Positions 12,269-42,087 of a stretch of DNA of 64,000 nt are shown here, one piece after another. How positions within the stretch are numbered: the first letter of the stretch is position 1; every line of letters starts with the position of its first letter. The position numbers and the translations under genes are program-made. This DNA comes from Octopus bimaculoides (taxonomy: Eukaryota). Below the pieces are notes generated by a model. It did no database searches. It had not been told where the DNA came from and worked only from the letters and a program-made list of their open reading frames with translations. The stretch is from positions 20,553,349 through 20,617,348 of the forward strand of contig NC_068986.1 in the NCBI RefSeq assembly GCF_001194135.2, in the 5' to 3' direction.

Positions 12269-12473
12269 NNNNNNNNNNNNNNNNNNNNNNNNNNNNNNNN
12301 NNNNNNNNNNNNNNNNNNNNNNNNNNNNNNNNNNNNNNNNNNNNNNNNNNNNNNNNNNNNNNNNNNNNNNNNNNNNNNNNNNNNNNNNNNNGCAAGTGTC
12401 TTCTACTATAGCCTCGGGCCGACTAAGGCCTTGTGAGTGGATTTGGTAGATGGAAACTGAAAGTAGCCCATCG

Positions 12474-12521
<48 letters not shown>

Positions 12522-13321
12522 TCCCCCCAACATCGCTTGAGTGATGCCCGATGCTGGTGTGTTTGCGTCCCCATAACTTAGCAGTTCAGCTGGAATTCTC
12601 AGTGTTTACATGTACCAACAAATGTTTGAGTATGTAGCATGGGTTGATCATTATAATTACGCAATCTAAATGACTATCGGCATTATAAATGTCTTGATGT
12701 GTGTAAACCAAATATGGCCACTTCAAGAGAATTTGATTCTGCTGCACAACATACCTGTGAGGACTCTCAATTTCTTGAATTTTAAATGTACATTTTTCCA
12801 CATGTACAAGCTGTGCTTCTACTAGCCAGCTATACTCCCCATTAGGTTTTGCATATATTGTCCATCAAATCAAGAATGGTGATATAAAAGCACAAGAAAT
12901 ATAACCAATGGAAGTGATTTACTTACAGCTTCATTTTAATTACATGTAAACAGCATGTCTCTTCAGTAGCTTTATAGATGATTATGTATACATTGTTACA
13001 GAATTCTAGCTAAATTCTTTAAGTTGTTTACTTGGTGTATATAACTTTACAGGATGAAATAAAATAATCATTCTCTTGTCCATCAAGCTACAGCCATTCA
13101 GCAAGCTCGGTTTTATTTCCTGTTTCAGAAGGAGACTTAGGTCTTTTCTGTGTTGTATCATTCACTTGCAATGTTGCTTCCTTCTTTAGGGGAAAGATAA
13201 TTGATGTAAAGTGTAGGTTGAAAATAGTGATAAACTATGATGTCAAAAACTTGTATGTAAATTAAGATTCTGCCTACTTTTGCAATATCTCAAATACTTT
13301 AGTAATATAAAAGAATGTTAA

Positions 13322-13499
13322 CCCCTTTTGTTACCAGCTCAGCTGAGACTACCCCTGGTTCTGTGATACAAACTTTTTGAAGTGATGTGATTTAAAACTT
13401 TTCAAACAGCAGCTTTATAATGACTGTTATTTTACTGAATTCATCAGTTTTGAAGTTATTTAAAACAGAATTTCAATAGAACTCTGGTAACAAAAAAGA
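13322..13499. mobile_element. piggyBac-type MITE (subfamily 2)
   Basis: TTAA|CCCCTTTTGTTACCAG…CTGGTAACAAAAAAGA|TTAA; related copies at ~6090-6302 and 22533-22747. Confidence 0.65.
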
Positions 13500-13834
13500 T
13501 TAAGTATACTGTCATATAAGGTAACTTCTCGTAAAGCTGCCAATTATTAGTTACGCATTAGAAGCATGTTTAAAAACAAATCTTCTCTTACCTGAGCCGG
13601 TGCAGCAAATGGAACAAGCATAAACATCTGGTTTAATATTTCCCTTTTAATAAAGTTTTAAAACCTAAAGGAAATTTCTTAATGCTAATTAAGAGTACTC
13701 CCTGACCAATCATAAGAACTGAAAATTATTGTTGAGGTCAGTGTACCGAATGGGAAAATATTGGGCACCATTTTCTATGAAAAACAAGGGAAGCAGTTTG
13801 TAGTAGCTGAGTGTCATTACGGGACTAAACAGAC

Positions 13835-14360
13835 CAGGGGTGGGGAAACTCCTGCCTGAGGGCGCAGTTGCACTTGTGAGCCCATTTTATTGTGCCTGCA
13901 GGCTGGTATACTCGTATGTACAAAATTTAGTAAATTTTTCAATTATAAAATTTATACAATATTCGTATTCCTATTTGTGACATAAGTCACGTTTCCACTG
14001 TGACTTAAAATGGTTAAACTCAAACAGAAAATCGTCTGGTAATTGCCATTTGAATGGAAATATTGTTTTTACTATAAAACACATATTGCTAGATTTTTAC
14101 CACCCCATTGAGACCCAACTACACTCTAGCTGAAAAATAAAGAATACCTCATAAGTAATATAAGCATTCTAAATTCAGTGGTTATGTTAATGATGTTATG
14201 CATTAATTTAATGTGTTAAACTTATCTTTATTAATTTATATCGAATTATACATATGTACAAGATTTACACAGATGTAAGAGTTAGAACTTATCATCCGCC
14301 TGCGGACCTTTTACTTTGGAAATTTTTTTCCTGCCGCATTAAAAAGTTTCCCCACCCCTG
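13835..14360. mobile_element. hAT-type non-autonomous element / MITE (526 bp)
   Basis: Perfect 16-bp TIRs CAGGGGTGGGGAAACT / AGTTTCCCCACCCCTG; 8-bp TSD AAACAGAC / AAATAGAT (6/8 identical). Confidence 0.85.
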
Positions 14361-15689
14361 AAATAGATCTATCCTCTTGATAGAAAATGTTTAATGAAAG
14401 CTGTTAACTAGAACCTAAAACTAAAATGCACATGGTTGCATTGGTATGTGTGAAGGCTATTTTTCCTGTCCATATTCAGGAATGGGGAAAAGAGGAATGC
14501 CACAAACTTATCTAGTTATGTTTGGCTATTGAAGCGAGTTATAATTTTGATGGCATTGAATCTAGCATACCATACAAAGTAATGCCAGCTATGTTTGGTT
14601 TAAAATGACAAATGACAAAACTAATAAATGCTTTGTGTAGAAAGTTTGAGATATTAAGATACTTGCATGAAAGCAATTTCTACAGAGCAATCTAGTAAAG
14701 AGCTACTTTAAGCTATTTAATGTAAATAAGACCTGCCTGAAGTTTATATGTTCTGTGTACCACTGTAAAAATATTAATACTGGAAATATTTCCTTTGTTG
14801 ATATACTATCAGGCATAAAGAAGCTGAAAGTTTACAATGTGTCTCTTGTGCTACTGACTATTGTTAATGTTGGAAATGCTTTGTTGACAACATGATCAGC
14901 CTGGCAAATTAAGTTGAAATAATGTAAAGGTTGTCAACTTCATTTAAGATAAAGTAATTGTATTTAGTCTACTTGACATTGAGTACTCTCTGTAACTTCA
15001 GTTTATTTGTGGCATTGCTGTCTTTGAGAAATTTGCTTCACAACCATATAGTTTTGGATCTGATTGATGACATGATACCTTGGTCAAGCGACTCCTTTAT
15101 AGCCTCAGGTCAACCAATATCACTTGGAACTATATGGAAGCTTGTGTGTGTTTTTATTTTTTTTTGTCTTTATGTATCTTTGTGCTGGCACTACTTGTGC
15201 AGCAGTGACGTTTATATCACCCCATCTACAAAACATTCTGCTTAACAGTTTGATATGCAAAGACTATTGGAATAAAGTATATTACTTGAAAACAAGTAAT
15301 AGTTAGAAGGGTATCTAACAACAGATGACTGCCTTGTGAACTCTCACCTAGCACAGGGCAGTATGGAGGAATCAGATGTAAAAATGCTCAGGAGTCATTT
15401 GCATCACCCCAGGCATGTCAGTGTGGTTAAGAAGTTTACTTCGCAACCTTGTACAGGTGTGTTCTAGTAGTACAACCACAGGTTGAACATTGATAGCTAT
15501 GTAATTAGAATTTGATCAATACAAACTGCATCTGGTGTTTGTTTTTGACCATAACAAATAGATTTATTGAAATGAGTACAAGATTGGTATAAGTACTGAG
15601 GTTTGTATGACCAAGCTGTTGAAGAAAATGTCCCTAACTTCAGTTATTTGACTGACACCAGTAAAAATATATTAAACAGATTATCTTAA

Positions 15690-15910
15690 CCTTTTAGCAT
15701 TTAATCTGGCCATATCCAACCCAGATATTCTACTTGTTTTATGTTCAAACTGGCCAGATCTGGCCTCTCACACCTACCCAATATTTGTCATTCTAAACAT
15801 AAACAATAACATCACTGAAATCTGAAAGCAGCGAAATAATGCATAATTTATTCAAAATAATGTGAATAAATAAGCATTACATTTGACAGAATAATCTGAA
15901 TGCTAAAGGG
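15690..15910. mobile_element. piggyBac-type MITE (subfamily 1)
   Basis: TTAA|CCTTTTAGCATT…AATGCTAAAGGG|TTAA. Confidence 0.8.
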
Positions 15911-16145
15911 TTAAAATATATTAATCTGTATTTTTCTGCATACAAAGAAGTCAATAAAAAAAATTGGCTCTTTTTATTCTAGTTTTAAGCAAGCTGGTTG
16001 AAACCATGTTAGGGCTTGCTTGTTTTTGTTTTATTGAGAAAAAAAAATGCACATGACCTTTTATTTTATCAAATTGTTGTCCCATCATAAATTTATTCAG
16101 CTTGCATTTTTAATATCCTGTCATTTTCAATTCTTTTCAATATAG

Positions 16146-16296
16146 GTTTAGCCGAATTAGCACATCGTGAATACCAAGCAGGAGATTATGATAGTGCTGA
16201 ACAACACTGTATGCAACTATGGAGGCAGGAGTCAGACAACACTGGTGTATTATTACTCTTGTCTTCTATACACTTCCAGTGTAGAAGATTAGAAAA
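16146..16296 (+). CDS. OGT: OGT exon 2-equivalent (151 nt): (G)[49 protein letters not shown](K)
   Basis: tatag|GT…GAAAA|gtaagt; matches the OGT N-terminal TPR. Confidence 0.97.
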
Positions 16297-16672
16297 GTAA
16301 GTATACTCCTAGAACTAGTTTAAACTTACACAAGGGTTTATGGGTACATACTGTATATAATCTGCAAGAGATTAGTTTTCATGGTTGTTGCTTCAAGGCT
16401 AATGCTATATATAGTTGAATTCATTATTGCTAAAATTCAAATATGAATGGGAAAGATACTTATTGAAAATGGTTGCTGCTGAAATGTCAATCTGCTCAGC
16501 AACTTGACATTTCTGTTTTAGAGTTGTTTCTAATTTTTGTTCTTTTCCTGGGGGGTGGCTAGCTAAAGTGCCACAAAATATTTTGTTGCCATTTCTATAA
16601 AATCATTTTAAATGAGTAATTGAAAACAATTATTTTGGCAGTTTGATTAATTTTCTTTGTGTATGTACACAC

Positions 16673-16703
<31 letters not shown>

Positions 16704-16710
<7 letters not shown>

Positions 16711-16960
16711 GTCCCTTGACTATCACAGGTGTTGTGTTCCACCCCACCCTCCGCGATTGGTGAAAATCCGCGAAGTAGAAACAGTTACTGTACTGTATTT
16801 TTGTTTATTATTTTTATAATTTGTATATGTTCATTTTATTATAATTGCAAAACAATACCACGGAGGAATCGATGTAAGCTTAAATAATAAACTGCGATAT
16901 GGCAAGAGATTACTGTATATAAAACTAGTAATAAAGCTAAGGTTTAATTTATAAGTTTAA
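16704..16960. mobile_element. Probable Tigger/pogo-like transposon end
   Basis: CAGAGTAGTCCCTTGACTATCACAGG…CCGCGATTGGTGAAAATCCGCGAAGTAG resembles Tigger termini; the partner end was not found. Confidence 0.4.
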
Positions 16961-18024
16961 TGATAGCATTATACAATGATAAATAGAAATTTGTTTCTTA
17001 ATTTGGCTTGGATATAATGGAAATAATTAATTCTCTATTATATTCACTTAATTGTATCTTTTCCTTCTCCTTATAAATATGGAAATAGAAGATGACATAG
17101 ACTAACAAGAATAGATGCAACATAATTTTTGTTTGCTTTTCCATGCTGTCATGGATTGGATAGGTTATCGTGGGCGGAGTCAGTTCTCATGGAGTTTATT
17201 GGGGCCTTATTTTGCTTTTATATTCCATTTTGGGGATGGTTTCTATAGTTAGGTGTTTTTCATGTACTGGGCGGATTTTATCATAGCACCAGAAAAGTGG
17301 TCTTTTTACCTCTATGAGTAAATAATATTCTCCTCTATACAATATCTCCATTCAAGGCAACATGGTTGTGTGGATGAAGAGTGATGGCAAAGAGAATCAG
17401 AGTGAGAGGGTATGATGTGGGGGGGGGGGAGTAGCGATGCAGGTGAGGTGACAGAAGGAGTAATGGAAGAGGCAATGATTGACAGCTATATGTTGTCGGT
17501 GAGGAGATTGAATAGAAAAAAGTACAAGTATGATTGATAGGAAGATAATATTGGAAGAGAGTAATGGAAATCAGAGAGGCTGAAGGTACAGTGATATATG
17601 TCTGCCATGAATAATGTATTAGGAAGTTAGTTTGAGAGAGATGGATAACAATAATGGGAGTGTGACGGATGTCAGTAATACGTGATTTTAGAGGAAGTAA
17701 TGCGAGTGTGATGGGTAGCTATGAAGAGAGTGTGAGTAATGGATGTCAGTGAAGGGAGGGCGAAAGTGATGGCTAGCGACAAAGAAGGGTGAATGATGGA
17801 AATGCATTTGAACACAGATTCAATGCCAGTTTGGCATAATACAATGGTAGAAAATAAATGAATGTTTTTTTTTTTTTAATTAATTTTAGAATTAATGAAG
17901 AATTTCGGTGCTTTGTAAAATAAGCATTTATATATGCACATACATGGCTGTATGATTAAGAAGATTACTTTCCAGCCATGTGGTTTTGGGTTCAGTTCCA
18001 CTGCATGGCATCTTGGATAAGTCA

Positions 18025-18782
18025 TCATGATTGTTTAAATGTCTGCCTTCCATGCTGGCATGGGTTGGACAGTTTGACAGGAGCTGGTCAGGCAGAAGCC
18101 TGCACCAGACTTCTGTGACTGTTTTGGCAGGATATTTACAGCTGGATGTTGTTAACATCAACCACTCAGCAAAGTGGACTTAGTGCTTTTTATGTGGCAC
18201 TTAGATAGAGGTCAAATCAATTTAAAGGACCTCAGTTCACAACTGCCCAAGAGAGACAAAACAAAGCTGCAGCATTTTAACAAAATTCTGGAAAGCATTT
18301 TCACATGTTCTGCCATTTAAGCTATCCTCTTACATAATTTCTTATTTTTTTGTTGTTGTCCACAAGGGGCTAAACACAGAGGGGACAAGCAAAGACAGAC
18401 AAAGGGATTAAGTCGATTATATCGACCCCAGGGCGCAACTGGTACTTAATTTATCGACCCCGAAAGGATGAAAGGCAAAGTCGACCTCGGCAGAATTTGA
18501 ACTCGAACGTAGTGGCAGACGAAATACTGCTAAGCATTTCGCCCGGTGTGCTAACGTTTCTGCCAGCTCGCTGCCTTCTCTTACACAATTTCTGTTAATC
18601 AACAGCATTTGCTTTCAACTTCTGCAGGTCAAAAAAGAGCAAATTCTAAAGGGATGATTAGACACTAAAATATATTAATCAGAGGAGTGGGAAGGAGTTA
18701 GTTACAGAAGAGATAATGAAAAGACAAAACTTTAAGCTCTGGTGGGAGTAGAATGGAGTTTACTAGTTGGGAGAAGAGATGG
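18025..18782 (-). mobile_element. Retroelement 3' fragment (same family as 2857-3478), interrupted by a SINE
   Basis: Reverse-complement match to 2857-3478 on both sides of the nested SINE. Confidence 0.75.
18343..18577 (-). mobile_element. Young tRNA-derived SINE with a Nin/MESC-like central domain
   Basis: Minus strand GAGTTCAAATTCTGCCGAGGTCGACTTTGCCTTTCATCCTTTCGGGGTCGATAAATTAAGTACC; 16-bp TSD CTCTTACATAATTTCT (18327-42) / CTCTTACACAATTTCT (18578-93); CpGs intact. Confidence 0.85.
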
Positions 18783-19552
18783 ATCATATGTATGTGGGAA
18801 TTGCTAAAGGCTTTTGAGTGGATTTGGTAAACGGAAACTGAAAGAAACCTGTTGAGTGTGTGGCTTGTGTGCAAGATTGTGTCTGTCTGTCTGTCTCTGT
18901 TGGAAGTTGTAAATGAGTGTCATTCATTTCCAGTGTTCTACAGAAACTTGTTTGCCAACAAGAAGGGCATCTGGCTGTAAAAAAACTCTGCCTCCATAAA
19001 CTCTCTCCAGCCCATGCGAACATGGAAAAGTAATGTTAAAACAATGATTATCTAAGCTGGTGTTTATAATACAATATAAAGTATTTTTACGAATATTTAT
19101 TATGGAGCTGTTCACTATTAATATATTATGCTAAAGAAATTTAATTTATATTAAACACTTCAATATAAGTGGTTTTAAGAGAGTTTGTATCAGAGAACTA
19201 GAGTAGATTGGTTGTGTGGTTTGTTGGTATTTGAAAGGGTAATCTTTTGAACAATTTCTTTTAGTTTTCATTCCATTGTGTGTGTGTGTGTGTGTTTATT
19301 TCCAACTTCTATTTGATAACTGATGTTGGTTTGTTTACATTCCTATAACTTAGTGATTCAGCGTATTGGAGTCAGTCTGTTTGACTAAACTCAAGGCAGT
19401 GCCACAATCTAATGACTGAAACAAGAAAAAAAACAAATAAAATAGGTACTATTGCAAAAGGAAAGGTATAATGTTATAAAATAGCTTTTGTGTTTTTGTC
19501 TTTGAGTAAAGTCCATCATCCGGCTAATTAAAGCTTTTGTTTTCCTTTTCAG

Positions 19553-19796
19553 ATCAGCTTATTTTAGTCAACTAGCTATAAAACAGAATCCAATGTTAGC
19601 TGAAGCATATTCAAATTTAGGCAATGTCTACAAAGAACGAGCTCAGTTGCAAGACGCTTTAGAAAATTACCGCCATGCTGTTCGGTTAAAACCTGATTTC
19701 ATTGATGGCTATATCAATCTAGCAGCTGCCTTGGTCGCCGCTGGAGACATGGAGCAAGCAGTGCAGGCGTACGTTACAGCATTACAGTATAATCCT
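19553..19796 (+). CDS. OGT: OGT exon 3-equivalent (244 nt): [23 protein letters not shown]…ALQYNP
   Basis: ttttcag|A…AATCCT|gtaagt; overlaps ORF 19593..19844. Confidence 0.98.
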
Positions 19797-20626
19797 GTAA
19801 GTATATGCATAGTTTTTTTTGTTTTTTTTTTCGTTTTTCATTAGCTTTCCTGCAACATCCATTTGTCTATTGTATATAAGGTGTTGTGACTAGATTATTT
19901 CCTGTTGCATAACAGCGTGGCTAAAAGAGGTGCAGGCACGACTGTGTGGTTAGGTTCACTAACCAAGCTTACCTTGAGCAAGGACCAAATCCTTGAGTGT
20001 AGTTTTGAAAAAAGCTTAGGTGTATGTGTGTATATAGGCACAGTAATGGCTGTGTGGTTTAAGATATTCCCAACCATATGCTTTCAGGTTCCATTTCACT
20101 GTGTAGTACCCTGGGCAAGTGTTTGATATTATAGCCCAGGTTGATCAGAACTTTAAGTGGGTTTGGCTGATGGAAACTGAATGGTGCATATACATATATA
20201 TCATCATCATCATTTAACATCTGCTTTCCATGCTGGCATGGGTTTGACTGGGGACTGGTGAGCCAGATGGCTGCACCAGGCTCTAAGTGCCAGTAAGGCG
20301 ACAGGTGGGGTTTAGTTCACAAGTGATCTAAATGGTTATGTACACTAGGTAAGTGCTGTAATGGATTACTGGGGCCCCAAAGTTATAGCTTAGATGGTAG
20401 TTATGGAGCCATTGCAGGTATTTTGTAAAAGCAACAATGACTCAAGGGCCTAGAGTTTAGTGTGCCGGCACTTATCAAACTGGTTACAAATTTGTGAATT
20501 TATATATATAAATAATCCACAGCCCTTAGTTCAGTAACTAGTTAGATAAGCACCAACACACTAAACTCTTGGCCCTTGAGCAGCTTCTGCTAAATATTAA
20601 AAATATACATATACTTATATTTTGAG

Positions 20627-21295: not shown

Positions 21296-21364
21296 GATTT
21301 GTATTGTGTACGGAGTGACCTGGGTAACTTGCTCAAGGCATTGGGGCGATTGGATGAGGCAAAG
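21296..21364 (+). CDS. OGT: OGT exon 4-equivalent (69 nt): [23 protein letters not shown]
   Basis: tacag|GAT…AAG|gtaaaa (weak donor). Confidence 0.98.
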
Positions 21365-22532
21365 GTAAAATATGTACTTCCTGTGTCATGAAAATTTTAC
21401 TCCACACCTATATTTTGTGTAAATAAATCTATATATTACATATGTGTATATAGATATGTCTGAGTGCATATATATAAACATATATATATAAATATATCTA
21501 TGTATTTATATATATGTGTGTGTGTACATATATGTATGTATGTATGTCTGAGATTGACTGTCAATCTTTTCTTTTCCTTTGTAATATACAATATTGTAGA
21601 TATGGGATCAATTTATCCATTTAACTGTCTCAAAGATGTTAAACCATCCTTTGTCAAATCTATTTAATAAGTTTTTATCTTCTGTCAGAAGACTGCAGTG
21701 TGGTCATGTTGATTTTCCCGGGATTCCCTGTTTTTCTAGATGATGGAGCTGGGGCTTGAACATATCTGGACATTTTGTTTCTTTTTAAAAATTCAGACAA
21801 AAAAATGAACGCATTACTTAGTTTATTTATTTATTTTTTTGTTTGAATTTTTACCTGAAATTGCTTTCGATTTCCTTATCATCCTCATTTACTTTGATCA
21901 GTTAGACCCTCCAAATAAAAGCCAAATTTAAATTGTGTTTCATAATTGTATATTTCACACTTGAAAAATGGAAATTTCCTTTAGAATTAGTACTTATTTT
22001 GTATTGCTAAGCAGATATGAATCCAAGCTCGATAGATATTGATGGCAGATATTCCAATTTGATAAAAACTAGCTCAGCTTGTAGTTATGTTTCATAAATT
22101 GAAACCCAACAAAGCATTTTACCATGCAATATATAAAGCTGTTTTCTCAAACTAATTTTTTTCTAAAATACGAGACTCCACGATAGTATGAAAAACAGTT
22201 AATTGAAATTTCTGCTTGGTCTATTTATAACTGTTGCGGTTAAGCAGTTTAGTTATCGAATGTATTTTATTAGAGAAGGCTTTTAGATTTAAAGCAAAAT
22301 ATTTCTTGATAATTTGCTTGTCACCTATTGTATAGCTAATGAATTTAGAGGGAGAGTTAAATCTAGAATGACTTGTAGAATAAAGGTTTCAAACCACTGC
22401 GTTCTTTACAAATGGGGGAGGCATCCTTATCGCTACATTTGAACAGGTCTTCTTTGAACCAGCACTAGACCTAATAGATGTATTATCTTTTGATTAATCA
22501 TTCTTGTTAGAGAAAAAGTAAATCATTTTTAA

Positions 22533-22747
22533 CCCCTTTGTTACCCTGTTTTTGTTGAAACACCCGTGCTTTGTTTCAATTAATTTTGGAAATAGTGAAT
22601 AAGTTATTAAAATAACCTGGTCGTTATTAAAGCTGTTGTTTGGAACATAAATTAACATGAAATTCTGAGGGAAGGTTTTAAGATTATTTTAAAACAGTTT
22701 GTTTTATGAAGGCAAGGGTGGGTTCTGGCAGGTTGGTATCTAAAGGG
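22533..22747. mobile_element. piggyBac-type MITE (subfamily 2)
   Basis: TTAA|CCCCTTTGTTACC…GGTATCTAAAGGG|TTAA. Confidence 0.75.
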
Positions 22748-25700
22748 TTAAGTTTGTATGTGTATAGTGGGGAAAGTGGAAAACTGCATGTAACTATGTT
22801 ATGTAAGTGTATGATGTGTGTGTCTATATATATGCTCACATGCATTATTGAACTAAGTTGATAGGTTTACATTAGAGTTTTATTTGAAATTTAATGATGA
22901 TGATAAATCATCTAAAAGTGATCTGGCTAACTGACAGTTGGTTTTTCAATAATTAATCAGCAGGTTAATCTGTTGATTCAGTAAGGGGTTTTTTTTTTTC
23001 ATTTGCATGTTGAAATTTATACCTTGCATATTAATTAGATTTAATCTCTTATTTAAATGGGGGAATGAACCTGCTCTCTCTAATCCATATTTAGCTTGAT
23101 CTAGCATTCTGTTTATGCTGTCATGTAGGGATACATATTTTATATACTCATGTTTGAGAAATTTTGATCTTAGCCATGTAGAGAAGTAAATAAGATACTA
23201 ACTTTGTTAGTTTAGGATTGAACAGCCAATTTGTACTTTTGCTCTGTTACCTTCTACCTCTGTTGACAAGTAAGAGAAACAGAAGTTCTTGTTCAGTGGT
23301 GCATTACCACTTGCATGAAATGAACTTGTAACTGCAGCAAAAGTTTTATTACTTTTATAATTGAAAACCCTTTATATTTTCCCCTTAAAGTGGAATTGTT
23401 AAAATGATCCAATGCATTGAAAAGTATTTTTTTTAAGGATTTTGTAAAACAGAATATTCTCTTATGAAATACACCTGAATTTTTTTTTCTTTGTCATTTT
23501 CTTCCTATATTTGATTTCCCCTTTTGAAAGATCCTTGCTTCTCCAAGAAATGTTCTGTTGATAATTTTTTTCCAAACTTTTCTTTGAGATACAGGCTAAC
23601 CTTTTCCCCTCCCCTTCTACCTAAATCTTCATACATTCTGTCCTGAGGGATAGGGGAAAAATACCACAAAACGATCTAGACTTTCCCAGGAGAATCAATG
23701 ACCACTCTGCAACCTTAAAATTTTGAGATTCACAGGAAGGAAGTTCAGGCTGGTCGTGGTTCCCTTACATACTGGTTCTAAACTTAAAATTCAAAATAAA
23801 ATCTTTTCCAAATTTCTGAATGTTTTAAAACTTCAGCTGCAATCATATTATGTATATATTTTTGCCTGAAGTTTTTCTGATTTAAGTGACCAACTTTTGT
23901 TTGATAAAGCCTTTTGACTTTAATTTAAAATCTTCTACCATAAAAATTGTTTTTGTATCATAATTGCTTTATCAAAATTAAAAAAACCCAACAACCCCCC
24001 CCCCCAAATTCCAATAGAATTTTCAAGCTTTTTAGTATCCAGTATGTATGTGCATTCTGAGCCAGCCTTAACTTCCAATCATTGCTATCATATGTTATGA
24101 AAGCTGGAACCCCTACCAGTTAACCCCAACACCATTTAAAAGATTATACTGCAGGATGCTGAATGAAGCCAACTACTACTACTATTACTCAATGGAGTGT
24201 GAACTGTTTGCATTGCAGCACTTGCTGTTTAATATTGAGGGAGAAAGCAAGGCTTGAACTAGTCTTGCTAATACTGCCACAATGTCAGTCAGGATCCAAT
24301 TGCTCCCACTGTTATTTATATTAGGACACATTTTATAAATTTAGTTGTCACATGTCTTTAATTTAATGTCAATGCTTTCTAAAGAAAAGAGAAAAGGACT
24401 TGGCAGCGCCTCTTAAAATTCATCTAAGAAACTGCATGGGAAAAAATATATATAAGAAAAAAAAAAAGACTTGGAAATAAATATTTTCCTTAGAATTTAA
24501 AGAAAAAATATTGCAATGTCTAGTCTTCTGTTGTCATTACAACACATTGCTTAGTTCCTGTGATTTATATTGTTCTTGTAGTATAATGACAATTATCTGT
24601 AGAGGCATATCTACTTCTCTTTTCTGTATATGGTTCCCATAGTGCATTTTTTTACACTCTTTGTACTCTTTGCCAATTTATCTATTTTACTGTTACTACT
24701 TATTACCACTACTACTACTACTATTGCTACTCTTTTTTAACTACAACTAGTAAATGTGCGCGCTTTTAAGTTCTTGTTATGTCGTCAATCTGTAAGCTAT
24801 TTTGTGTCTAAAACGAAAAACCAAAAGTACGAAAGTATATGGAACACATGTGCTAAACATTTTAAAACTTTTTTAAAGCTTAGAATTTTTAGAAATACAC
24901 ATTTTCCTTTTTTTTTTCCCTCCTTTTTTTCCGTCTGTCTCTTGAGTCGGTATATAATACAGCAATACCATCCTGGCTACATTGTGCAGTATATTTACAT
25001 TGACAAAGGATTGTTTAACTGCTTTAGGGATAGATAAGATACTTTATTGTTTTGTAAAAAATTAAGTTCAAATCACTACAGGACAATGTTTATTGAATGT
25101 GTAAGACTTCCAGTTACAAATGATGCAACATTTTGTTTTTTATCATTTTGAATAAATTTTTGATTTCATATTCTTTTCTTAAAAATTGGTCAGAACAGTG
25201 GAGATGGCTGAAGCAGCAGACTGCCAGGCTGATGCTTTGATGTAATTAGTTTGGTACCTCACTGTTCTAAGTTCAAATCCCAATTGGACTGACATTTTTT
25301 TTTTGCATACTTTGAGATGAAATTGGCCCTAGCAATTTATTGGTGTACTTAATTCAACAAATCTTTCCCAACCCCAAAAAATGTGCCTGATTCCTGATTA
25401 TGGCAACTGTAGGAGGTAACAATAATGATATTGTTAAATGTTTACTTCATTATTATTAGCTTGCTATTTTGAAAGGTAACCATAATGAAAATTTAAATCT
25501 TAAAGAACTTGAATGAATTCTTATTAATTTATAAAAGCAAATTAGTTTGAGTGGGATACAAATTTCAGTATATATGTATATATATATAGAGCAATCATGC
25601 AGACAAATGTCAAATTTATATAAGAATATTCCACATTCTACAAACATCTCTTTGTGGAGAAACTGTTTTGATTTTAGCTGTAAAGCAGTTTAGTTTGATT

Positions 25701-26609
25701 TGAGTTACAAGATGGACTTGCATATTTAGAGCTCTACTAAAGTAAACTTAGTGGGTAAAATCATAGGACAAATGCCACTCTTAAGTTTTGATGATTCTTT
25801 TGGTTAATTTGTTGTTTAATGGTCTTTTAAGAATTGTTCCAATTGTCTTCATATATGAAGGATTTATATTGCACCAATGTGTGTCTGTTAAAGGTCATCA
25901 TTTAATGCTTGTCATGTTAGATTTCCATTTGCAACCTTATTACATAAGATGTGAATCAGCTGCTTACTTGGTGTCCGAAGCAGATGTTTTAATGCAGTTG
26001 TAGATTAGTGATAATTTTATGTCAACTTTTCATTCTGGGATGGGTTCCATGTCTCATGTCCAAGTCAGTGATTACTTGGAGATACTTCCCCCTCAAAGAC
26101 AAGTTGAAAGACCATTTCATTTTTGGTTGCAGCTGGATGCCCTTCATTCATTGACCACTTTACCATGTCTACCAGATGCATTGTATTGTGGGACTCACAC
26201 TAGTCTTCATTACTCTGTAATGTGTTTGTTCACTCAAGATAACAGGTCTTGTGAAGGTGATTACAAGAGTGATGGCAAACAGTGAACCAGGCTGGGTCAG
26301 TGAAAGTTGAGGGAGTGTAATGTTAGGAGAGAAGGTGAGGGTAGTAGAAGAGAAAAGTATGATGGATAGAGGTGGGCAATGATGAGTGATAGGTATCAAT
26401 AGCAAATGGCTTCTGGCGGGAGAGAGAGTGATGATTGGTAGTGCAGAAAGGGTGTTCTGGGGTTGTATCTGGTACTGCCTGAAAAAAGAGAGTGAATAGT
26501 CGAGTAATTTAGATGGAGCTGATGTAAACTTGGGAGCGACCTGTGTATGTGTAACTAACGCACACACACAAGAAATTTAAATATATATATGTATGCGTAC
26601 AGGTAGCTT

Positions 26610-27180
26610 ATATCTTTTAACCACCATCGTTTTTGACATTTCACCTTGCTTGCACAAGTGGACAGACCTTCTCCAGCACTGCAGGTTGCCAAGCATGTTA
26701 GTCCTTTGTCATCTCCTACATGGATCTAACCACCAGTCTTCATATTATCCCATATTGTGTTTTTCTATAGGTTCCATCCACTTTGAGTGCCCTGCATTTC
26801 TTCGTACAACTTTTGTCTTATACATTGTATATCCACACCAGCACAGTTGTATCTGTCATACTCTACATCTGATATTTTTAATATCTAGTTTGCCACACAA
26901 CTCATTTGCATTCTGTTATTGTTCATGCATAACACATCTGTCAGAGCATGTTCGCTTCAATTCTTTTTAGTCTTCCCTTTAAGTCTTCTGCTTTAAGAGC
27001 TTGCATCAGAGTGAGTACACAGGCATCATAAAAAATTTCCATTGACTCTGAAAAAGAAACCCTTTGTAACTTCCTCCAGGCAATAGCTCCTTGAACTTTC
27101 TCCAACTTGTTTTGCCCTGGCTACTATACTTTTGCACTTACCTTCATTGTTAATTTGGTCACCAAAATTACAGACTACTT
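26610..27180 (-). mobile_element. Decayed RTE LINE 3' fragment
   Basis: Similar to the 8300-8900 RTE segment; minus-strand wording resembles the RT C-terminal region. Confidence 0.55.
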
Positions 27181-27835
27181 CTAGGGAGCCTTCTGGGCCT
27201 TTCAGAGAATCTGTTTCCTGTGTGCGCTATTCCTGAAAATCTACTGGATAATATTTTATACAATTTGAGCATTTTGAGCAAACCTATATGAAAACTAATA
27301 GCAAAGCTGCTTTTCATATCAAAAATACTGTTTTGGATAAAGTTAAAAGCTTAAAACTGTCTTTGAAATTGATGTTGAGTTGCATCTATCACTTTCCAAA
27401 AAGCATAAAACTACATACCAGAAGTTAATAATAATTAAAAAAAAAATATTTTTCAACTGGTCAGTACAAGATTCCATAGTAACTAAATGTACAAGCCAAT
27501 AAAATACATTTTATAAGTATAATCACCAAGTATTTTGTGGTAGCTGGTAATAGACATTTCTTTTGTGTAATCCTTTTCCAAGGAAGGGTGCGTCACCATT
27601 TGGTCATGAGGTATAGCTTGTGATTTAGCCCAAATTTAACATTTTAGTGCTGAATAATATTCAAAGGGCAAAGGCTAGGATATAGTAGCCTCTACCTATT
27701 TTGAAATGGATTTGAACACAATCCAAGAACTAATTCATTAAATTTCACTTGTCTGTATTAATACTGACAACATATTTGATTTCCATATGTTGTTATAAAT
27801 TATACATAATAAATTTTCCTTAATGGCTCGTGTGC

Positions 27836-27874
27836 ATCTCTTCAGGTGTGTATCTCTTCAGGTGTGTATCTCTT
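27836..27874 (+). repeat. 16-nt tandem repeat ATCTCTTCAGGTGTGT x2.4
   Basis: Units at 27836-51 and 27852-67, partial unit at 27868-74. Confidence 0.9.
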
Positions 27875-28343
27875 GACCATGGTCCTGCCCCCCACCCCCG
27901 TGCTTAACAGCTATTTTGTAAACCTCAAAAATTGAATATTTTATTTTGTTCATGTAATATATAAATCCATTGACCTGTTAATCTGCAGTTGATGTAATGG
28001 TTGTTTGCTCAATGCTCTAATCTGCCAATATTTCACACACACACACACACTAGTAGGATCAATTTAGTTCATAATTGAATCACTTCTGTGGAGTAATGCT
28101 TTACTAACAAAGGATTCATAAAAGGCACTATTTTATATTTTTCCCTCAAAAAACAAAAAAACGGTTGACAAATTTTATTGTCCTTAATAATTTTAAACTG
28201 GGAGTTACCCATTCAATAAAATTCCTGTGGATTGATTTTAATCATTTTTCATATTTTTAAAAACTTGACTGCTGATTATTCACTGTTGTCAACATTCTGT
28301 ACCACTGAACACTAATGATCGTCTTTTTTGATTTCTACACAAG

Positions 28344-28616
28344 CAATGCAGGTGTGCTCACTGCTATCAAATAGTGTGCCCGCCTGGTCAGTCAGTCACT
28401 CGTGTCTCCTGGGTCAGTCACTAGCTGTGGGTCGGTCAGCGGTTGGTCATCTTCTACCTACTCCCGGCCCAGCCTGGCCAGGGCAGGCTGCTGCAGCAGC
28501 ACCAGGACCAAAGGACAGACTCCTCCTAGTTGACTACTACTACAGAGCTATGAATGAATACATTGGTATTAGTAGACATCTCTGAGGTGTGAGCTGAAGG
28601 TATTGTATACTTAAAT
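28344..28616 (+). other. Candidate decoy/poison cassette exon in OGT intron 4
   Basis: GC-rich island in an AT-rich intron. Acceptors AAG (28343) and CAG (28351) follow a T-tract. Candidate donors at 28587, 28589, 28600 and 28617. Stops TAG 28422-24 or TGA 28583-85, depending on the acceptor. Confidence 0.55.
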
Positions 28617-31476
28617 GTGAGTCAATTTCAGTTGTAGTCCCTGGCTATTTGTCTCCTATTTCTGCAGTGTAATGACATCTCTTTTACTGATTCATGATGG
28701 TCAAGTGTGATTTGGGGCAGTTTGGATTGCAAATTTCACCACCTAATGACATATATATATTTTCCTTTGGTTATAGTTTTTGCTGCTGGCTTTGAAACTG
28801 TTTTCCTCTTCATTGTTATAAAGGACACAGCTTAATTTGACTCCACCTTCAAAATTGTTGATGGAAGTAATATTTGTTTTAATTTCAGTTATCTTAGATG
28901 ATGAGAAAGCATTTAGTTCATATAACAGTTGAAATTTCTCTTGACTAATAATAGAATATTCTTATCACTGAATTAAAAAGAAATACTAATTTAAGAACCG
29001 ACAGGATTAACTAATTTTAGTTTACCCTCTCCTTTAAGTTTTACAAAATGCTGGTCTATAAAAATACACCCTTTAGATGTTGTAGTGTAATAAAAAAAAA
29101 TGTCTATATAATTTAGTAGATATATCTTTTTTATTGCATCTTAAAGTGTCTTTAGTCAAAACCATTCACTTGATTTAATTATGTGCAGTTCTCTTCTTGG
29201 AATTGATTTTGAATGCTGAAGGCGCACCCTTGGTATAAGAACTTCATTGGCAAAACATGCTGCAAGGGCAACAACCTGTTCACACCATGGTTGTTAAGTT
29301 TTTTTTTTTTTTCATTCACTGTTTTCTTTGGCACACTGCAGTTTATTTGTTGACTCTTAGTTCTCTTGTATTTAGCCCCTTTCTAGTAATAAATAGTCTT
29401 TTGTTGCTGTCATAAATGTTTTCCAAATTTTTTTTTTTTAAATAGATATTTTGTATTTGATTTTGATTTGTTTAAATTGTATAACTTATATGGAATTTGA
29501 AATTCTAATTGATATAGTTGTGAACTATTTGATTAAACATAGCTTTTTTGGTAAGTACAGCTAACTGAGAATATTCATTGAATCTAGTTAATTTAGCATT
29601 TTTTTGTTTTGTTTCGAAATCATTTTTGATTTCGCATCTGTTTTTGAAAGGAGACGACAAAAAACGTAATTCTGTGTTTTAACCTTTTAACACCTCAAGT
29701 GGTGTTAGTAGAATATATTGAAGTGTTTTTTGTTTTAATTTTTTTTTCTTGAAAGAATTATTACAATTTACAAATTTGCCCTGGTAAGAACCATTATGGC
29801 AAGACTTCATTTTTCAAAATCAGCTTAGTTAAGTGGATATTTTATTTTTGTTTCAACTTACTGTATGTTTAGTATACTTTTTCTTTATACAGTGTAATAG
29901 TTCTAGTTCTTCACGCAATCAATTTTCTGAATAATATGCTATATATATATGCTTTTCTAGTTTCTGAGGTAGGTGTAAGAAGTAACTATTGAAGGAGATG
30001 ACTGAAGAAAATCATTGTTCAAGAATACACGGTGTAGGATTAGGACTGAATCTTGCTCAGAAAATCTGCATCTTAAATGCCATCGGCACTCCTTTAGTTA
30101 TGGTAATCTTAGTAACAGCATATATTTGAAGTATTTGTATTTTATATCTACTTAATATGTATGCAAGAGAATGTAGGATGCTGCATGGTGAAATGGTTTT
30201 GGAGAAGTTACACATCGTCACACGACTCATCGAGTAACATTGAATGTTTTACACTTGGTCTTTCAATGAAGATTCCCTGCTGTTGTTTCCTATTGGATTC
30301 CTAGAAGCCTACAATTGCACAATGTTCTGCTTTCTCAGTGTGCAGTAAACCATGAAGAGTTACAGATCTTTACCAGTGACAGGATGTCAAACCAGATACA
30401 TTGAAATCAAAATGGAACAGTATAATTTATTTTACTCAATATAACTTTCCATGGAAGTTTAAAAAAAAAGCAAAATGCAGTTTCATATAAGATATATTTG
30501 GAATGCTGCTTAGTTTCAAATTATTTTAAATTACCTGAAATATAATTTTGATACAGTGTTTAATTGATGATGATGATGATGATGATGATCACTCATATAG
30601 TATGAAGATGCTTTCCCATTCTTTGCTTGATCTATTATTTGCTTGAGCTGTATTTTGCTCAAAAGTTATGGCAAGGAAATTAGTTAAAAGCTACTGCATG
30701 TATGAACCAGTATTTTTGCATTTTATGAAATGGAATTTCTTCAAAATGTAGTCAGTGTGTCACATAATTAAAATTTTCCATCAGAAATTGGTTGATAAGG
30801 GCTGACAGAAATAGCATATTTTCTTTTATGCATTATTTACAGTAGAGGATTCCTGTTTCATGTTTTTTTTTCATTATTATTGTATGAGGAATTTGTCCCA
30901 GAATATATATTAAAGTGTTGTTTTTTTTTCTATTTAAGTAAAAGGGTGAGAATTTATGTCCTTGCTTTCTGCTGAGATTATTAGTGATAGAATATTTCTT
31001 GTTTGGTTTCTTTGAATGGTGATTTTGTTTTCTTTTCCTCTCTCTCTTTCTTTCTATCCTACTGTCCCATGTAACAGCTTTACCTCTTTATGCCATTATA
31101 CTGCAGTTGAAAGGATATTGATATGCCCTAAAATACAAGAAAAATAGAAAACAAAAACACCAGCATCAAATAACTTAATTTGTATTATTAAAAGTGACTA
31201 CTATAATACTGATTTTTTAAGGTTCTTTTCATATTTTTTCATACAAGCTTTTTTTTATAAAGTCATTTTTCATAACATCACTAATTTCTCCAAAATTATT
31301 GCTAATTTTTCAGAATAATTGTTTTTCTATCTTTTTTCATTTTTCTTCTATTAGATTTTTTTTTACATTTTTATTTCGTTTCTTTACAATTTTTTTCTTT
31401 GTCTATTTCATTTATATATTTCTATATCAGTATTTTTGTGTGTATGTATTTTATGCAGTTACTTTTTTATTCCCTT

Positions 31477-31521
31477 AGCGCGCGAAGCATTGCGCGGACG
31501 CACTTGATCGCAGGCGAATAG
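31477..31521 (+). promoter_or_regulatory. GCGC-rich intronic island 1 (candidate splicing-regulatory element)
   Basis: AGCGCGCGAAGCATTGCGCGGACGCACTTGATCGCAGGCGAATAG, directly after a ~280-nt T-rich tract and a TAG; shares three motifs with island 2. Confidence 0.5.
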
Positions 31522-32400
31522 ATAATTTTTTTTTAGATGTCAGATTTCTTCTCTTGTATTTTAAAGTTTCTTCATCTTGCCATGGATGACTTGGATGTCT
31601 TCAATTTATCCAAAATTTTTTGACTGATAAATTCTAAAAGTACATTTTAATTCACTTTGGGCTATATAAATAACACCTTATTTAAGTGTTTTATTTTGCA
31701 AAATTTGTAATAATTAGTGAAGGGAGTGTCAGTTTTTCAATGTTAACAGCAATATCGTGTTTTAGTTAAGGAAAAATTAAAAAGAAAACGAGCAGAAGTT
31801 TTCATTGGAATAATAACTAGAGTTAGAGAAATACTTCAAAAAGTCATGTGTGTGTGGCTACCCATGAGATGAGGCAGCTTATTGGGAGAAGAGAAGTGAA
31901 ACCTAATTATTTTATTTCACCAAGCAGAACGGCTTTCTTCTCCTATTATTACAAGAGAAGAGAAATGACATCTTTATTTTTTTTTAAATTTTTTTATATA
32001 CATATATATTTAATTCCATATATGTATGTATATAAAATGCGTGAATGTGTGTATGCATATATATGTGTGTATATATGCATATATATATATATATATATAT
32101 ATAATTTTTGTTTTACTTTGGTGTTATCAGCACAAGTCATCACTAATGTATGGTTTATAGAACCAAAGTTTCTTTTAGCAGCTAACGTTTCAAATATATA
32201 ATTAACTTAAATTTTAGATTTATTAAAATGTATTTATCAATATTTAATTTTACTTTTTTTTTCCCCCCCTAAAATAATTTCAATTTTTTCTTTTGCTAAA
32301 TCTCTAGATGATGCATTTATACAGATGTTAATTTGTTAGGTTGCCTAAGAAAACATGGTTCTAAAATCCTATATGCATGGTTAGTGCTTAACACAGTATT

Positions 32401-32463
32401 ATTGCGCGCGTTTAGTTCATAGTGCAAAACTTCTACTGGAGCGCAGGCGACTTGAGCGCTTTG
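32401..32463 (+). promoter_or_regulatory. GCGC-rich intronic island 2 (candidate splicing-regulatory element)
   Basis: ATTGCGCGCG…GAGCGCAGGCGACTTGAGCGCT, ~95-155 nt upstream of the exon-5 acceptor. Confidence 0.5.
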
Positions 32464-32557
32464 CTTTTGGATGTTCTTTTTAACTTTCTTTGTCTTTTGC
32501 AAACCTGTACAAACATCATTTATTTTGTTTATAACTGTAAATTTGCCTACACTTTAG

Positions 32558-32734
<177 letters not shown>

Positions 32735-38625: not shown

Positions 38626-38775
<150 letters not shown>

Positions 38776-40046: not shown

Positions 40047-42087
40047 GTAAGGAAGGTTAGAGTGTCTAAAATACATTTCTCTCCTTTTATTGTCCGTATT
40101 CTGTGTCTCAATAATACATTTTGCATTTTAATAAAAAAATACTTAATATACAGACAATAGTTACGGGCAATATTAGTAGGAATGTGAAATTGGTGGGTTG
40201 CACTTAAATTATTATAGGCAGGGGTAATAAAATTGAGTAATTTTTTTTCTATTATTTCTAATGATATTTGAAAATTATTTTAGCAGTTTTGATGGTAGAG
40301 ACAATAGAAAACATGCCTTGTTGCTTTTTCAGTGTCTAGTCTGGTACATCACTTGCTCTGAGCTAAAATCTTGCCAGAGTTGACTTTGCCTCTCTTTTGG
40401 GTAAGGCTAGTGAAATAAATACCAGTGACATACTGAGGTTTTGATTTGATCAACTCTTATTACTTTCCCTTTTAAATTTTTTTCTCCCTCAAATCAAAAA
40501 GAAATAATTATCAAAATCTTTGTCAAAATTTTAGCAAGTAAAACACTATCGTTCTGTGATGACATTTTGCATCATGTGCACCCATATAATTTCATATTGC
40601 TACTGAGGAGGGAGATGCTAAATGGCTATCTTGTAGAAAAAATGTCATACACTCATTGTTAATGTGAGCTTTGTATTAACAGTTAAGAGTTCCCTAAACC
40701 TTAGTCATTTTTTCCGTGAACATGAACTGAAGAAACTTTGTTCTGAATTAAACAAGATTTATTATTAATCATGTTCATTAGTCAGTAGCTTCTCAGATCT
40801 ATTTTTTAACATCTGAAAATAGGAATTTATATAGCTTTTCAAAAAATTTTTACAACTCTGCTGGGCTAAGGCATTCAGAGATTTGAGTTTCGTACTTTGC
40901 TCTTTGGGTATAATTCTTGGATTTTTTTGTAATCATAGGAACATTTGTAATCATTAAAATTGAAGGAATTTTTTTTTAAAATTACAAAGGCAAAACAAAC
41001 TACATTAAAGTTTATAAATAATAGTTAAAATGTATTTTTGATAAAACTGCTTTTTCTGATAAAATTTGTGTGTTTTATATGCTTGAAAGTGTGTGTGTGT
41101 GTGTGTGTAAATGAATGAATGAATGAAAATATATATAAATACACACAAATTTTAGATATTGATTTTGTTTATATCATTTTTCTTATATTTTTTTAGTAAT
41201 TTTATTTTACCTTTTTTTGAAAATAACTATATTACTTGCATTATTGGGGTTTGTTTAAAAATGTAAGTGCTTGTATAGAATTGGATCTAAGAAATCCTCA
41301 TTAATTAAGGTTCCAATTATTTAATATTCATAAAAATAAATCCGCTTCATTTGTACTTGACAGTCTTAAATTAATTAATATAGAAAGTATGAATTAGTGA
41401 ATATAAATTTATTTGGACGTAATTCACAAATAATTCTAAATACCTTCTAGGATAATTATTTCAAGATTTTTTTTTTTTTTACTAGGCCTCATGTTTTATA
41501 ACAGTCTATTTTATTCAACCAGTGCTTTTTATGGTAACTGCAAGCAATTTGATTAAAAACATACAAGTTCATTTAGTAGCTACTGATTTCCTTGAATTGT
41601 TGAATTGTAGCTTATGTGGTTTTTTAAAAGAAAATTAGTATAATTTAAACATAGACAGAGCATGTGTTCCCTCATTTGATTAAATTTGCATTTAAAAATA
41701 CTTTTACATATCTGAATATTTCTCTATTCATTTATGTTGGGTTCTCTAAATATTCATTTTGATATGAAGATAACTTTCTGTTAGATGGTAGCTGTTTTTG
41801 TAGTTAAAAAAATATGAAATGAAGACATGAGGCCTTTTAGCAAGTATGACTTATTATATCACTTGTCTTATCATCTCCCAGAGCTGTATGCTTTTTGTAA
41901 TGTTTCTTCTGGTTGAAAAATTACTAGGCTAAATCACTTTTGCTTCAAACTTGTTAATTTCTTTTTTGTGTCAGTTACGAAATATATTTAATCTATTGAT
42001 ATAACTACCAATTCACTATTTAACGAGATCAGAAAAATTAAGTTGTTTTGTCAATAAAATAAAGTTAGGTCTGACTCTTTGTATACA

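Follow-up and report, generated by a model that had tools for sequence, protein, structure and literature searches.

Cells hold the activity of OGT, the single enzyme that writes O-linked N-acetylglucosamine (O-GlcNAc), within narrow limits. In vertebrates this is achieved partly through detention of OGT intron 4 by a decoy exon, also described as an intronic splicing silencer (ISS) (Park et al., 2017, PMC5588854; Parra et al., 2018, 2020, PMC6097662, PMC7373989; Govindan and Conrad, 2025, PMC12017769). The ISS is conserved from mammals to jawless fish, and Drosophila is without an ISS-like element (Park et al., 2017, PMC5588854). The question raised by the locus treated here is whether a mollusc throttles the same gene through the same intron. 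The locus is a window of 64,000 nucleotides (nt) from Octopus bimaculoides (contig NC_068986.1, positions 20,553,349 to 20,617,348) that contains the OGT gene. All positions below are coordinates of this window and refer to the + strand unless otherwise stated. A reading of the bare sequence, here called the original prediction, had singled out a GC-rich island within an AT-rich OGT intron as a candidate decoy or poison exon packed with 5' splice-site mimics, and had taken it for the functional equivalent of the vertebrate element.

The island is very likely a true cassette exon, conserved and bearing a stop, in an intron that is retained. The role that fits best, and which is considered probable, is that this non-coding OGT cassette (28344-28616 or 28344-28599), lying in the counterpart of vertebrate intron 4, acts as a poison or decoy exon.

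The cassette exon, its conservation and the retained intron

The gene is identified as OGT by its concatenated open reading frame (ORF) pieces, which match human OGT structures with E ~1e-129. A model of 21 exons gives an uninterrupted protein of 1019 amino acids (aa) that is 99% identical to Octopus OGT, and wherever Octopus species differ its residues are exactly those of the O. bimaculoides isoforms. The island lies in the intron that splits '...GRLDEAK' from the next coding exon. The parts of the gene that surround it are:

21296..21364, + strand: OGT coding exon, counterpart of vertebrate exon 4; 92.8% nt identity to cuttlefish
21365..32557, + strand: host intron of 11,193 nt, the longest intron of OGT; positional orthologue of vertebrate OGT intron 4
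32558..32674, + strand: OGT coding exon, counterpart of vertebrate exon 5; 94.9% nt identity to cuttlefish

The boundary interrupted by this intron, EEAK/ACYLK (a slash marks a splice site throughout), is identical in position and phase in cuttlefish (L004), in another cephalopod (L005, GCA_054771915.1), in a chiton (L013) and in a vertebrate (L012). The vertebrate intron is 3,230 nt long and includes the published human decoy 5' splice-site sequence (25/25 bases plus a 2-nt insertion), as derived from the morpholino in PMC7373989. Because the boundary is the same and the published decoy 5' splice site lies inside the L012 intron, the octopus intron and vertebrate OGT intron 4 are positional orthologues. 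The termini of the octopus intron are weak. The donor, AAG/GTAAAA at 21365, has the second-lowest matrix score of the 20 OGT donors, while the acceptor before 32558, with its poor polypyrimidine tract, ranks third from the bottom among 21. The flanking exon ends at 21364 and 32558, on which the original prediction had relied, are those of the gene model.

The element itself consists of the following parts:

28184..28729, + strand: coleoid-conserved block; 85.8% over 556 nt to the cuttlefish Acanthosepion pharaonis, E 1.7e-177
28310..28316, + strand: candidate branch point CACTAAT, assigned from the consensus; 27 nt upstream of the acceptor used in cuttlefish and invariant in 3/3 aligned cephalopods
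28320..28343, + strand: polypyrimidine tract and acceptor AAG (28341-28343), the acceptor used in cuttlefish transcripts L006 and L008
28349-28351, + strand: second AG (CAG), use not seen in transcripts
28344..28616, + strand: cassette exon (putative poison/decoy exon), 273 nt, defined by splicing of the cuttlefish orthologue (L006, L007, L008)
28344..28599, + strand: shorter cassette form, 256 nt, made with the alternative donor
28385..28449, + strand: degenerate GGTCAGTCA repeat bearing 5' splice-site-like words, none seen used as donor
28422..28424, + strand: in-frame TAG, 26 codons into the exon, common to octopus, cuttlefish and L005
28600..28605, + strand: alternative donor GAAG/GTATTG, used in cuttlefish L008; core of a motif shared with an oyster-group species
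28617..28622, + strand: main donor AAAT/GTGAGT, used in cuttlefish L006 and L007; score 6.2
28617..28690, + strand: conserved downstream intronic flank, 84% to cuttlefish and 97% to L005, with an acceptor-like TTTGTCTCCTATTTCTGCAG ending at 28667

Splicing of the cassette was observed in cuttlefish. Transcript contigs from three separate runs (L006, L007 and L008) map to the cuttlefish locus with canonical GT-AG junctions. Exon 4 (GCAAAG/gt) is spliced to ctacacAAG/CAATGC..., the equivalent of window position 28344, and the insert ends at TTAAAT/GTGAGT (L006 and L007, equal to 28617) or at CTGAAG/GTATTG (L008, equal to 28600) and is followed by exon 5. Two donors 17 nt apart are thus in use, and of the tandem AGs, which are 8 nt apart, the upstream one alone is seen in use. 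The cassette measures 262 nt (or 245) in cuttlefish and 273 nt (or 256) in octopus. ORF1 of L006 and of L008 encodes 189 aa, made up of 163 residues of exons 1-4 followed by QCRCAHCYQIVCPPGQSVTRVSWVSH and a stop. Normally spliced OGT mRNAs are also present (L001-L003), and the cuttlefish protein clusters include 852-aa products starting inside exon 5. Junctions to both flanking exons, closely spaced alternative sites and a premature stop, which are among the characters of a decoy exon as defined by Parra et al. (2018, 2020), are hence all found in the cuttlefish orthologue. As regards the junctions originally predicted, the equivalents of 21364 to 28344, 28616 to 32558 and 28599 to 32558 occur in cuttlefish; neither the acceptor at 28352 nor the donors at 28587 and 28589 were seen in use. 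None of the listed Octopus protein isoforms uses the cassette.

The anatomy described by the original prediction was borne out in every detail by direct inspection. The GC content is 0.54-0.545 at 28300-28599 against 0.26-0.37 in the flanks. The T-tract and the tandem AGs read CGTCTTTTTTGATTTCTACACAAG/CAATGCAG/, with AAG ending at 28343 and CAG at 28351; their acceptor scores, 5.4 and 5.5, are mid-range for OGT acceptors. From 28344 a TAG at 28422 is reached after 26 codons, in agreement with the 163 + 26 codons of the cuttlefish ORF1, while from 28352 a TGA at 28583 is reached after 77 codons, and a stop is present in every combination of acceptor and donor. The island holds the 12 GTNNG words that had been counted, seven of them within the 61 nt from 28387 to 28447, and ends in four donor-like sites (GTGTGA 28587, GTGAGC 28589, GTATTG 28600 and GTGAGT 28617). 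GTCAGT is indeed the actual donor of the OGT introns at 47681 and 53900. The GT words stem largely from the degenerate repeat (GGTCAGTCAGTCAC, GGTCAGTCAC, GGTCGGTCAGC and GGTTGGTCA), in which the GT at 28387 scores 7.8, corresponding to the 99th percentile of the GT sites of the intron. The GGTCAGT copies at 28386 and 28412 are perfectly conserved and match 6/7 core positions of the U1-complementary consensus. Repeat units three and four are partly lost in cuttlefish through an 11-nt deletion, and to judge from that alignment they are dispensable there.

The truly non-random property of the island is its conservation. RNA contigs of two other octopus labels (organisms B and C) show zero differences from the window across 28203-28850 (B) and 28236-28758 (C), while the flanks of these two differ from the window by 3-9%. 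The contig of organism C has 37 substitutions and 15 gaps over 28050-29177, all of them in the ~605 nt that lie outside the invariant block; at a flank rate of ~8.6% the chance of a difference-free block of this kind is ~e^-47.

Octopus and cuttlefish represent the two coleoid superorders, which by published estimates split in the order of 250-300 million years ago. Absence from other coleoids had been named beforehand as one of the outcomes that would tell against the element, and the block was found in the orthologous intron of cuttlefish. Indeed, only 1 of the 20 OGT introns aligns to cuttlefish at all, namely the host intron, and it does so over 16% of its length. As far as such alignments can tell, the retained intron is far more conserved than the other introns of OGT, as is also the case in vertebrates. 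With gaps included, the exon is 90.5% identical to cuttlefish, reaching 100% over the first 87 nt and 95.8% over the last 71 nt; the repeat part at 28385-28430 is 100% identical, and the adjoining intron is 91% identical over 78 nt upstream and 84% over 74 nt downstream. The mean nt identity of the OGT coding exons between octopus and cuttlefish is 79.7%. A non-coding cassette that is at least as conserved as neighbouring coding sequence, and that has conserved flanks, is what defines an ultraconserved poison exon, and this combination was found. The exon contains frame-breaking indels (-11, +2 and -2 in cuttlefish, +1 and +3 in L005), and since the reading frames are destroyed by these, the constraint on the exon is not protein-coding. 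The exon, its branch point, the polypyrimidine tract, the acceptor and the two donors are near-invariant across octopuses and cuttlefish, beyond the conservation of the coding exons. The two exons bordering the retained intron have the highest octopus-cuttlefish nt identity of all coding exons (92.8% and 94.9%). Such values are typical of regulated splice junctions and, read from the alignments, imply constraint on synonymous sites beside these junctions.

The island does not behave as a repeat, and the original prediction had recognized none in it. No second copy of the block is found on either strand of the window (self-match only), there is one match per orthologous locus, and the RNA contig depth over the block is without the spikes seen at nearby repeats.

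The whole host intron is selectively retained in sense-strand octopus RNA. Among the contigs of four runs labelled O. bimaculoides, those running from the intron into exon 5 have rough average depths of 15.2, 13.5, 11.3 and 9.0, against 71.2, 65.6, 18.8 (a junction-only contig) and 46.2 for contigs joining exon 4 to exon 5. The intron interior (21560-32010) is tiled at a depth of ~8-19 in all four, with spikes at repeats only. In run X13 a contig leading from exon 4 (~21336) into the intron has a depth of 18.9, the spliced-junction contig one of 18.8. The most that can be said is that roughly one sixth to one half is retained. At the neighbouring introns the depth falls to zero, over the final 96 nt of the one upstream and the initial 46 nt of the one downstream, which argues against genomic DNA or a general pre-mRNA signal. 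In a stranded poly(A) run of organism C a few reads lie over the block; all pairs are oriented as + strand RNA, and the coverage is flat over the exon and its flanks. A long intron (11.2 kb, where >1 kb is looked for) is consequently kept while its neighbours are removed, as expected for a decoy exon.

Several further parts of the host intron align to cuttlefish at 74-92% (21639-21728, 23684-23754, 24059-24304, 24961-25125, 31861-31985 and 32122-32182). A second large conserved block is found at 31074-31551, with 70.8% identity over 521 nt to cuttlefish and 93.5% to L005. Among its features are acceptor-like sites (...TTGCTAATTTTTCAG/AATAATTG) accompanied by the branch-point motifs CACTAAT and TGCTAAT, an extended T-rich stretch and GCGCGAAGCATTGCGCGGACGCACTTGATCGCAGGCGA, which is rich in CpG and partly palindromic. 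The retained intron of the oyster group has motifs weakly resembling this block in the same order (P = 0.03-0.12 each). Lying ~1 kb before exon 5, the block may represent another regulatory or decoy-like element.

The exon sequence is also present in RNA of further cephalopod samples. Ten poly(A) or oligo-dT runs labelled mollusc, invertebrate or seawater metagenome (X25-X34) contain 26-93% of the 31-mers of the exon, and a 31-mer share of 0.44 is what is expected for a cuttlefish-like version. In metagenome scans the invariant 36-mer had 0 matches, and a degenerate motif met one unrelated contig without OGT exons.

Counterparts in vertebrates and in other molluscs

The vertebrate element, as described (Parra et al., 2020, PMC7373989; Govindan and Conrad, 2025, PMC12017769), is recognizable in L012: TACTAAC, a long polypyrimidine tract, the tandem acceptors TAG/AAG/, a GC-rich body of ~145 nt and the tandem donors ATG/GTAACGG/GTTTGT. 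The cephalopod exon lies in the same gene, at the same intron position and phase and in a selectively retained intron. Like the vertebrate decoy it is an internal cassette with a premature stop, preceded by a consensus branch point, a long polypyrimidine tract and tandem AGs. It also has a GC-rich body in an AT-rich intron, closely spaced alternative donors and a weak acceptor of the following exon, and ~0.5 kb is conserved around it, to be compared with 526 nt for the human ISS. The two elements differ when it comes to dimensions, the cephalopod exon being 256-273 nt long with donors 17 nt apart in an intron of 11.2 kb, while the vertebrate exon is 143-153 nt long with donors 7 nt apart in an intron of ~3.3 kb. 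The GGTCAGT repeats are found in the cephalopod exon only. Transcripts that include the exon assemble readily in cuttlefish, whereas in humans the decoy is seldom spliced in, and causality for retention and responsiveness to O-GlcNAc have been demonstrated in vertebrates only.

Homology in sequence between the two was considered and rejected. Their 3' ends look alike by eye (GACTAC...ATGAGATGAAATAATG/GTAACGG against GACTAC...ATGAATGAATACATTG/GTATTAG), but the resemblance failed shuffle and positional controls; local alignment to the vertebrate decoy gave P = 0.45-0.5 against shuffles, and hand-picked 3' ends P = 0.13. Since no sequence similarity survived the controls, the octopus element is classed as one that may work like the vertebrate decoy and not as its sequence homologue. 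Of the functional equivalence originally proposed, the orthologous retained intron and the parallel anatomy stand, and a common sequence does not; the term would thus be justified by anatomy and position.

Poison exons are known from other genes as well. The SR (serine/arginine-rich) and hnRNP (heterogeneous nuclear ribonucleoprotein) splicing-factor genes contain ultraconserved poison exons whose unproductive splicing is coupled to nonsense-mediated decay (NMD). The cephalopod exon shares with these the character of a non-coding, stop-carrying cassette whose nt conservation exceeds that of neighbouring coding sequence and extends into the flanking intron. It differs from them in that the host gene encodes a metabolic sensor enzyme, and in that the conservation is shown across coleoid cephalopods instead of vertebrates. 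Mammalian OGT reportedly also has an alternative exon for the mitochondrial form (mOGT) inside intron 4, said to have been described by Hanover et al. in 2003, a study cited in PMC5588854. The cephalopod exon resembles it in being an alternative exon of the same intron that joins exon 5, but the mOGT exon is a coding first exon, while the cephalopod one is internal, non-coding and joined to exon 4.

Within the molluscs, a stop-carrying cassette between the same two OGT exons was encountered in the oyster group. Truncated products of 192 and 195 aa (P0163 and P0164) turned up in the protein-cluster look-up, and three contigs (L009, L010 and L011, Logan transcripts) in the oyster (Crassostrea/Magallana) OGT cluster have a 67-nt cassette (TATACGAGG...CTTTATG/GTAATT). 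In L011 a 731-nt downstream part of the intron is retained. The body of this cassette is unrelated to the cephalopod exon, and its terminal ATG shares the frame of exon 5, matching annotated 868-aa isoforms that start with 'MTCYLKAIE'. However, 45 nt after the oyster donor follows CCGGAGGTATTGTATAC-TACATGTG, which matches the region of the cephalopod alternative donor. The shared motif of 22-26 nt, CCGRAGGTATTGTATAC(T)TAMATGTG (short form AGGTATTGTATAC), scores 32-35 against 18 +/- 2.3 in shuffles (P<=0.001), and the maximum over 25 other octopus intron pieces is 25. The oyster cassette is hence like that of cephalopods in its exon pair, its truncated ORF and this motif at the cephalopod alternative donor, and unlike it in its length, its body, its terminal ATG and the placement of the motif, downstream of the donor instead of at it.

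Further collinear matches between oyster and cephalopod (CTACACCTGGTATGA; ATTGCT...TTTTTCAGAA; GACGCTGCGGTCGC..GCGA) are individually marginal. Those in the second conserved block reach P = 0.03-0.12 each, and were set aside as suggestive only. The chiton intron (L013) shows neither similarity nor the shared motif. Short annotated isoforms that start at the exon 5 boundary, or that have novel peptides before ACYLKAIE, are found in oyster, in mussel and in several further clusters, two of which were read as scallop and gastropod groups; such isoforms are what an alternative exon at this place could produce. Taken together, these sequence comparisons support, without proving, an old molluscan origin of the alternative exon.

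Poison exon, decoy or something else

The proposed mode of action starts with recognition of the exon through its CACTAAT branch point, polypyrimidine tract, AAG and two donors, presumably by the octopus spliceosome in the same way as in cuttlefish. Productive inclusion would place the stop >190 nt upstream of the next junction and would make the transcript a presumptive NMD substrate or a dead-end, untranslatable mRNA. Unproductive engagement of the splice sites of the exon with the weak termini of the intron would, according to the decoy model of Parra et al., hold the intron in the transcript. Inclusion and retention would then both leave less OGT mRNA that can be translated. Probably the O-GlcNAc level of the cell or OGT activity decides between them, giving a homeostatic feedback analogous to that of vertebrates (PMC5588854, PMC7261177, PMC12017769), and the conserved GGTCAGT repeats would most simply be exonic U1-type or regulator binding sites tuning recognition. 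That the element really is such a homeostatic decoy/poison switch is given an even chance or slightly better.

The nearest competitor holds that the exon is a poison exon and nothing more: OGT output would be lowered by inclusion followed by NMD or truncation, while retention would be independent and result from intron length and weak termini. This is the less likely course. In its favour, the inclusion isoform was assembled in three cuttlefish runs, the host intron is the longest in OGT and has weak termini, and the oyster-group species includes its cassette and separately retains only the downstream intron part. Against it, conservation extends beyond the exon by ~80 nt on the upstream side and 75 nt on the downstream side, and other conserved blocks fill 16% of the intron, which suggests more than an on/off cassette. 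In the vertebrate precedent such exons drive retention, and antisense blocking of their splice sites in human cells sharply reduces it. A different outcome would be a protein, either a functional 189-aa N-terminal fragment of tetratricopeptide repeats or, after a downstream restart, an N-terminally shortened OGT like the short and mitochondrial isoforms of mammals. The annotated oyster, mussel and scallop isoforms that start exactly at the exon 5 boundary (MTCYLK or MACYLK), the in-frame ATG that ends the oyster cassette and the novel N-terminal peptides before ACYLKAIE in scallop and other clusters would all fit this. In cephalopods it is improbable. Neither junction creates an in-frame ATG when the junction sequences are read directly, and the 852-aa 'MAWSNLG' ORF starts at a valine position of the full-length protein, the ORF caller having probably assigned a start other than ATG. 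The 26-codon tail shares its nucleotide conservation with the non-coding flanks, the downstream frames are broken by indels, and the cassette is internal in the cuttlefish contigs and not a first exon.

Even less credit is given to a regulatory element acting at the DNA level, such as a conserved non-coding enhancer built of (A/G/T)GGTCA half-site-like words in which the exon features would be incidental. Cephalopod genomes do hold conserved non-coding elements, and the GC-rich island, the repeated GGTCA words and several other conserved blocks in the same intron could be read in this way. However, the invariant positions are the branch point, the polypyrimidine tract, the AG and the GT, those exact sites are spliced in cuttlefish, and the transcript signal is sense-strand; a dual role is conceivable. 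A small or structured RNA hosted by the intron (small nucleolar RNA, microRNA or other), or a piece of a mobile element, might be suspected from the compact GC-rich island in an AT-rich, repeat-rich intron. This idea is largely refuted and hardly credible: a search of 28000-29000 against Rfam gave no match at E<=1, only one copy of the block exists in the window, it has no depth spike and occupies the orthologous position in four cephalopod genomes, and the folding energy of the element is unremarkable (z = +0.58 against shuffles). RNA structure as the cause of the conservation was rejected on the same value.

A combined decoy and poison exon is preferred to all of these, and a number of results weigh against it. 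The lack of unusual RNA structure is one of them. No contig with a junction from exon 4 to the cassette or from the cassette to exon 5 was found in eight octopus RNA assemblies, and an exact look-up in the protein collection found neither the truncated products expected for octopus (189 and 240 aa) nor the downstream ORFs. A protein search with exon 4 plus the 26-residue tail gave OGT N-terminal fragments only, none with the tail, such ORFs being clustered under other representatives. Shared junction 31-mers were discarded as a guide to octopus runs, since the exon bases adjoining the junctions differ between species. The sole read-level support from octopus consists of two reads on the block in an oligo-dT run, both of which begin at the acceptor (~28342) with nothing upstream, one continuing into unlike sequence; the pattern (n = 2) fits splicing of exon 4 to the cassette. 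The retention data come from assembled contigs of runs whose library type is guessed ('RNA?'), and their depths are rough assembler averages. A blastn comparison with the vertebrate element returned generic branch-point and polypyrimidine-tract similarity only.

The mimics on which the original prediction laid weight also count for less than it supposed. The words are present, and the 12 GTNNG exceed the 6.6 +/- 2.1 of dinucleotide-preserving shuffles (P = 0.013); 5/25 GT sites reach at least the intron-wide 95th percentile of a matrix made from OGT's own 20 donors, where ~1.25 are expected. Sites matching >=4/7 donor consensus positions, by comparison, number 6 against 4.1 in shuffles (P = 0.2), so that the excess over chance is modest, and no observed transcript has its donor in the internal GT cluster. 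Finally, the inclusion isoform is abundant enough in cuttlefish for assembly in three runs, while a classical decoy is rarely spliced. Frequent inclusion points to a substantial poison-exon component, and the element may act mainly as a poison exon.

The rest of the locus and the wider meaning

Some other features of the OGT locus were noted. At 40047-40208 alternative donors 9 nt apart (AAA/GTAAGGAAG/GTTAGA) explain annotated isoforms with and without 'VRK' (KGKVRKVAEAE and KGKVAEAE). The 162 nt that follow the exon in this region are 87% identical in L005 and form the only conserved intron piece outside the retained intron. An alternative acceptor at 53591-53611 adds 'MNELLFQ' in the longest annotated isoforms, and 'MFVFR', encoded by the intron immediately before exon 7 (~38650-38684), opens an 811-aa isoform annotated in O. 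vulgaris (P0124). Several families of short interspersed repeats (D8-D20) occur in both orientations at 1100-20250 and 46750-51850, for example at 1920-2115, 4217-4496, 5253-5556, 8108-8294, 18035-18200 and 20067-20248, together with many TG/TA/CA microsatellites. Assembly gaps (N runs) lie at ~4710, 12270-12390, 39150, 57230 and 58540-59520. Rfam matches of the mir-297, mir-3149 and mir-466 type in the intron were discarded, being TG/TA microsatellites far below the gathering score.

The original prediction knew of no earlier description of such an element in a mollusc, and the full-text literature searched contained nothing, for cephalopods or any other group outside vertebrates, on decoy or poison exons of OGT or on retention of its introns. 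Within that literature, the octopus element thus extends a known kind of regulatory element to a new phylum, with an independent sequence. It is a clear-cut case of a non-coding exon that is ultraconserved in an invertebrate lineage, and antisense reagents could be aimed at it to alter OGT dosage in cephalopod models.

Whether the stop-carrying exon in this OGT intron is ancestral or convergent has a bearing on the age of the circuit. An ancestral origin, in the common ancestor of cephalopods and bivalves and possibly in that of molluscs and vertebrates, with sequences that have since diverged beyond recognition, is possible but considered rather unlikely. If it should nevertheless be true, intron-detention control of O-GlcNAc homeostasis would be among the oldest known unproductive-splicing circuits, and the cephalopods would have frozen their own version of it to near-invariance. 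The question has become directly testable, as the exon, its two donors, its acceptor and the shared motif are now defined to the nucleotide. Given the cephalopod element, the oyster cassette and the short molluscan isoforms, post-transcriptional throttling of OGT through this intron would either be very ancient, older than has been known, or have evolved repeatedly.

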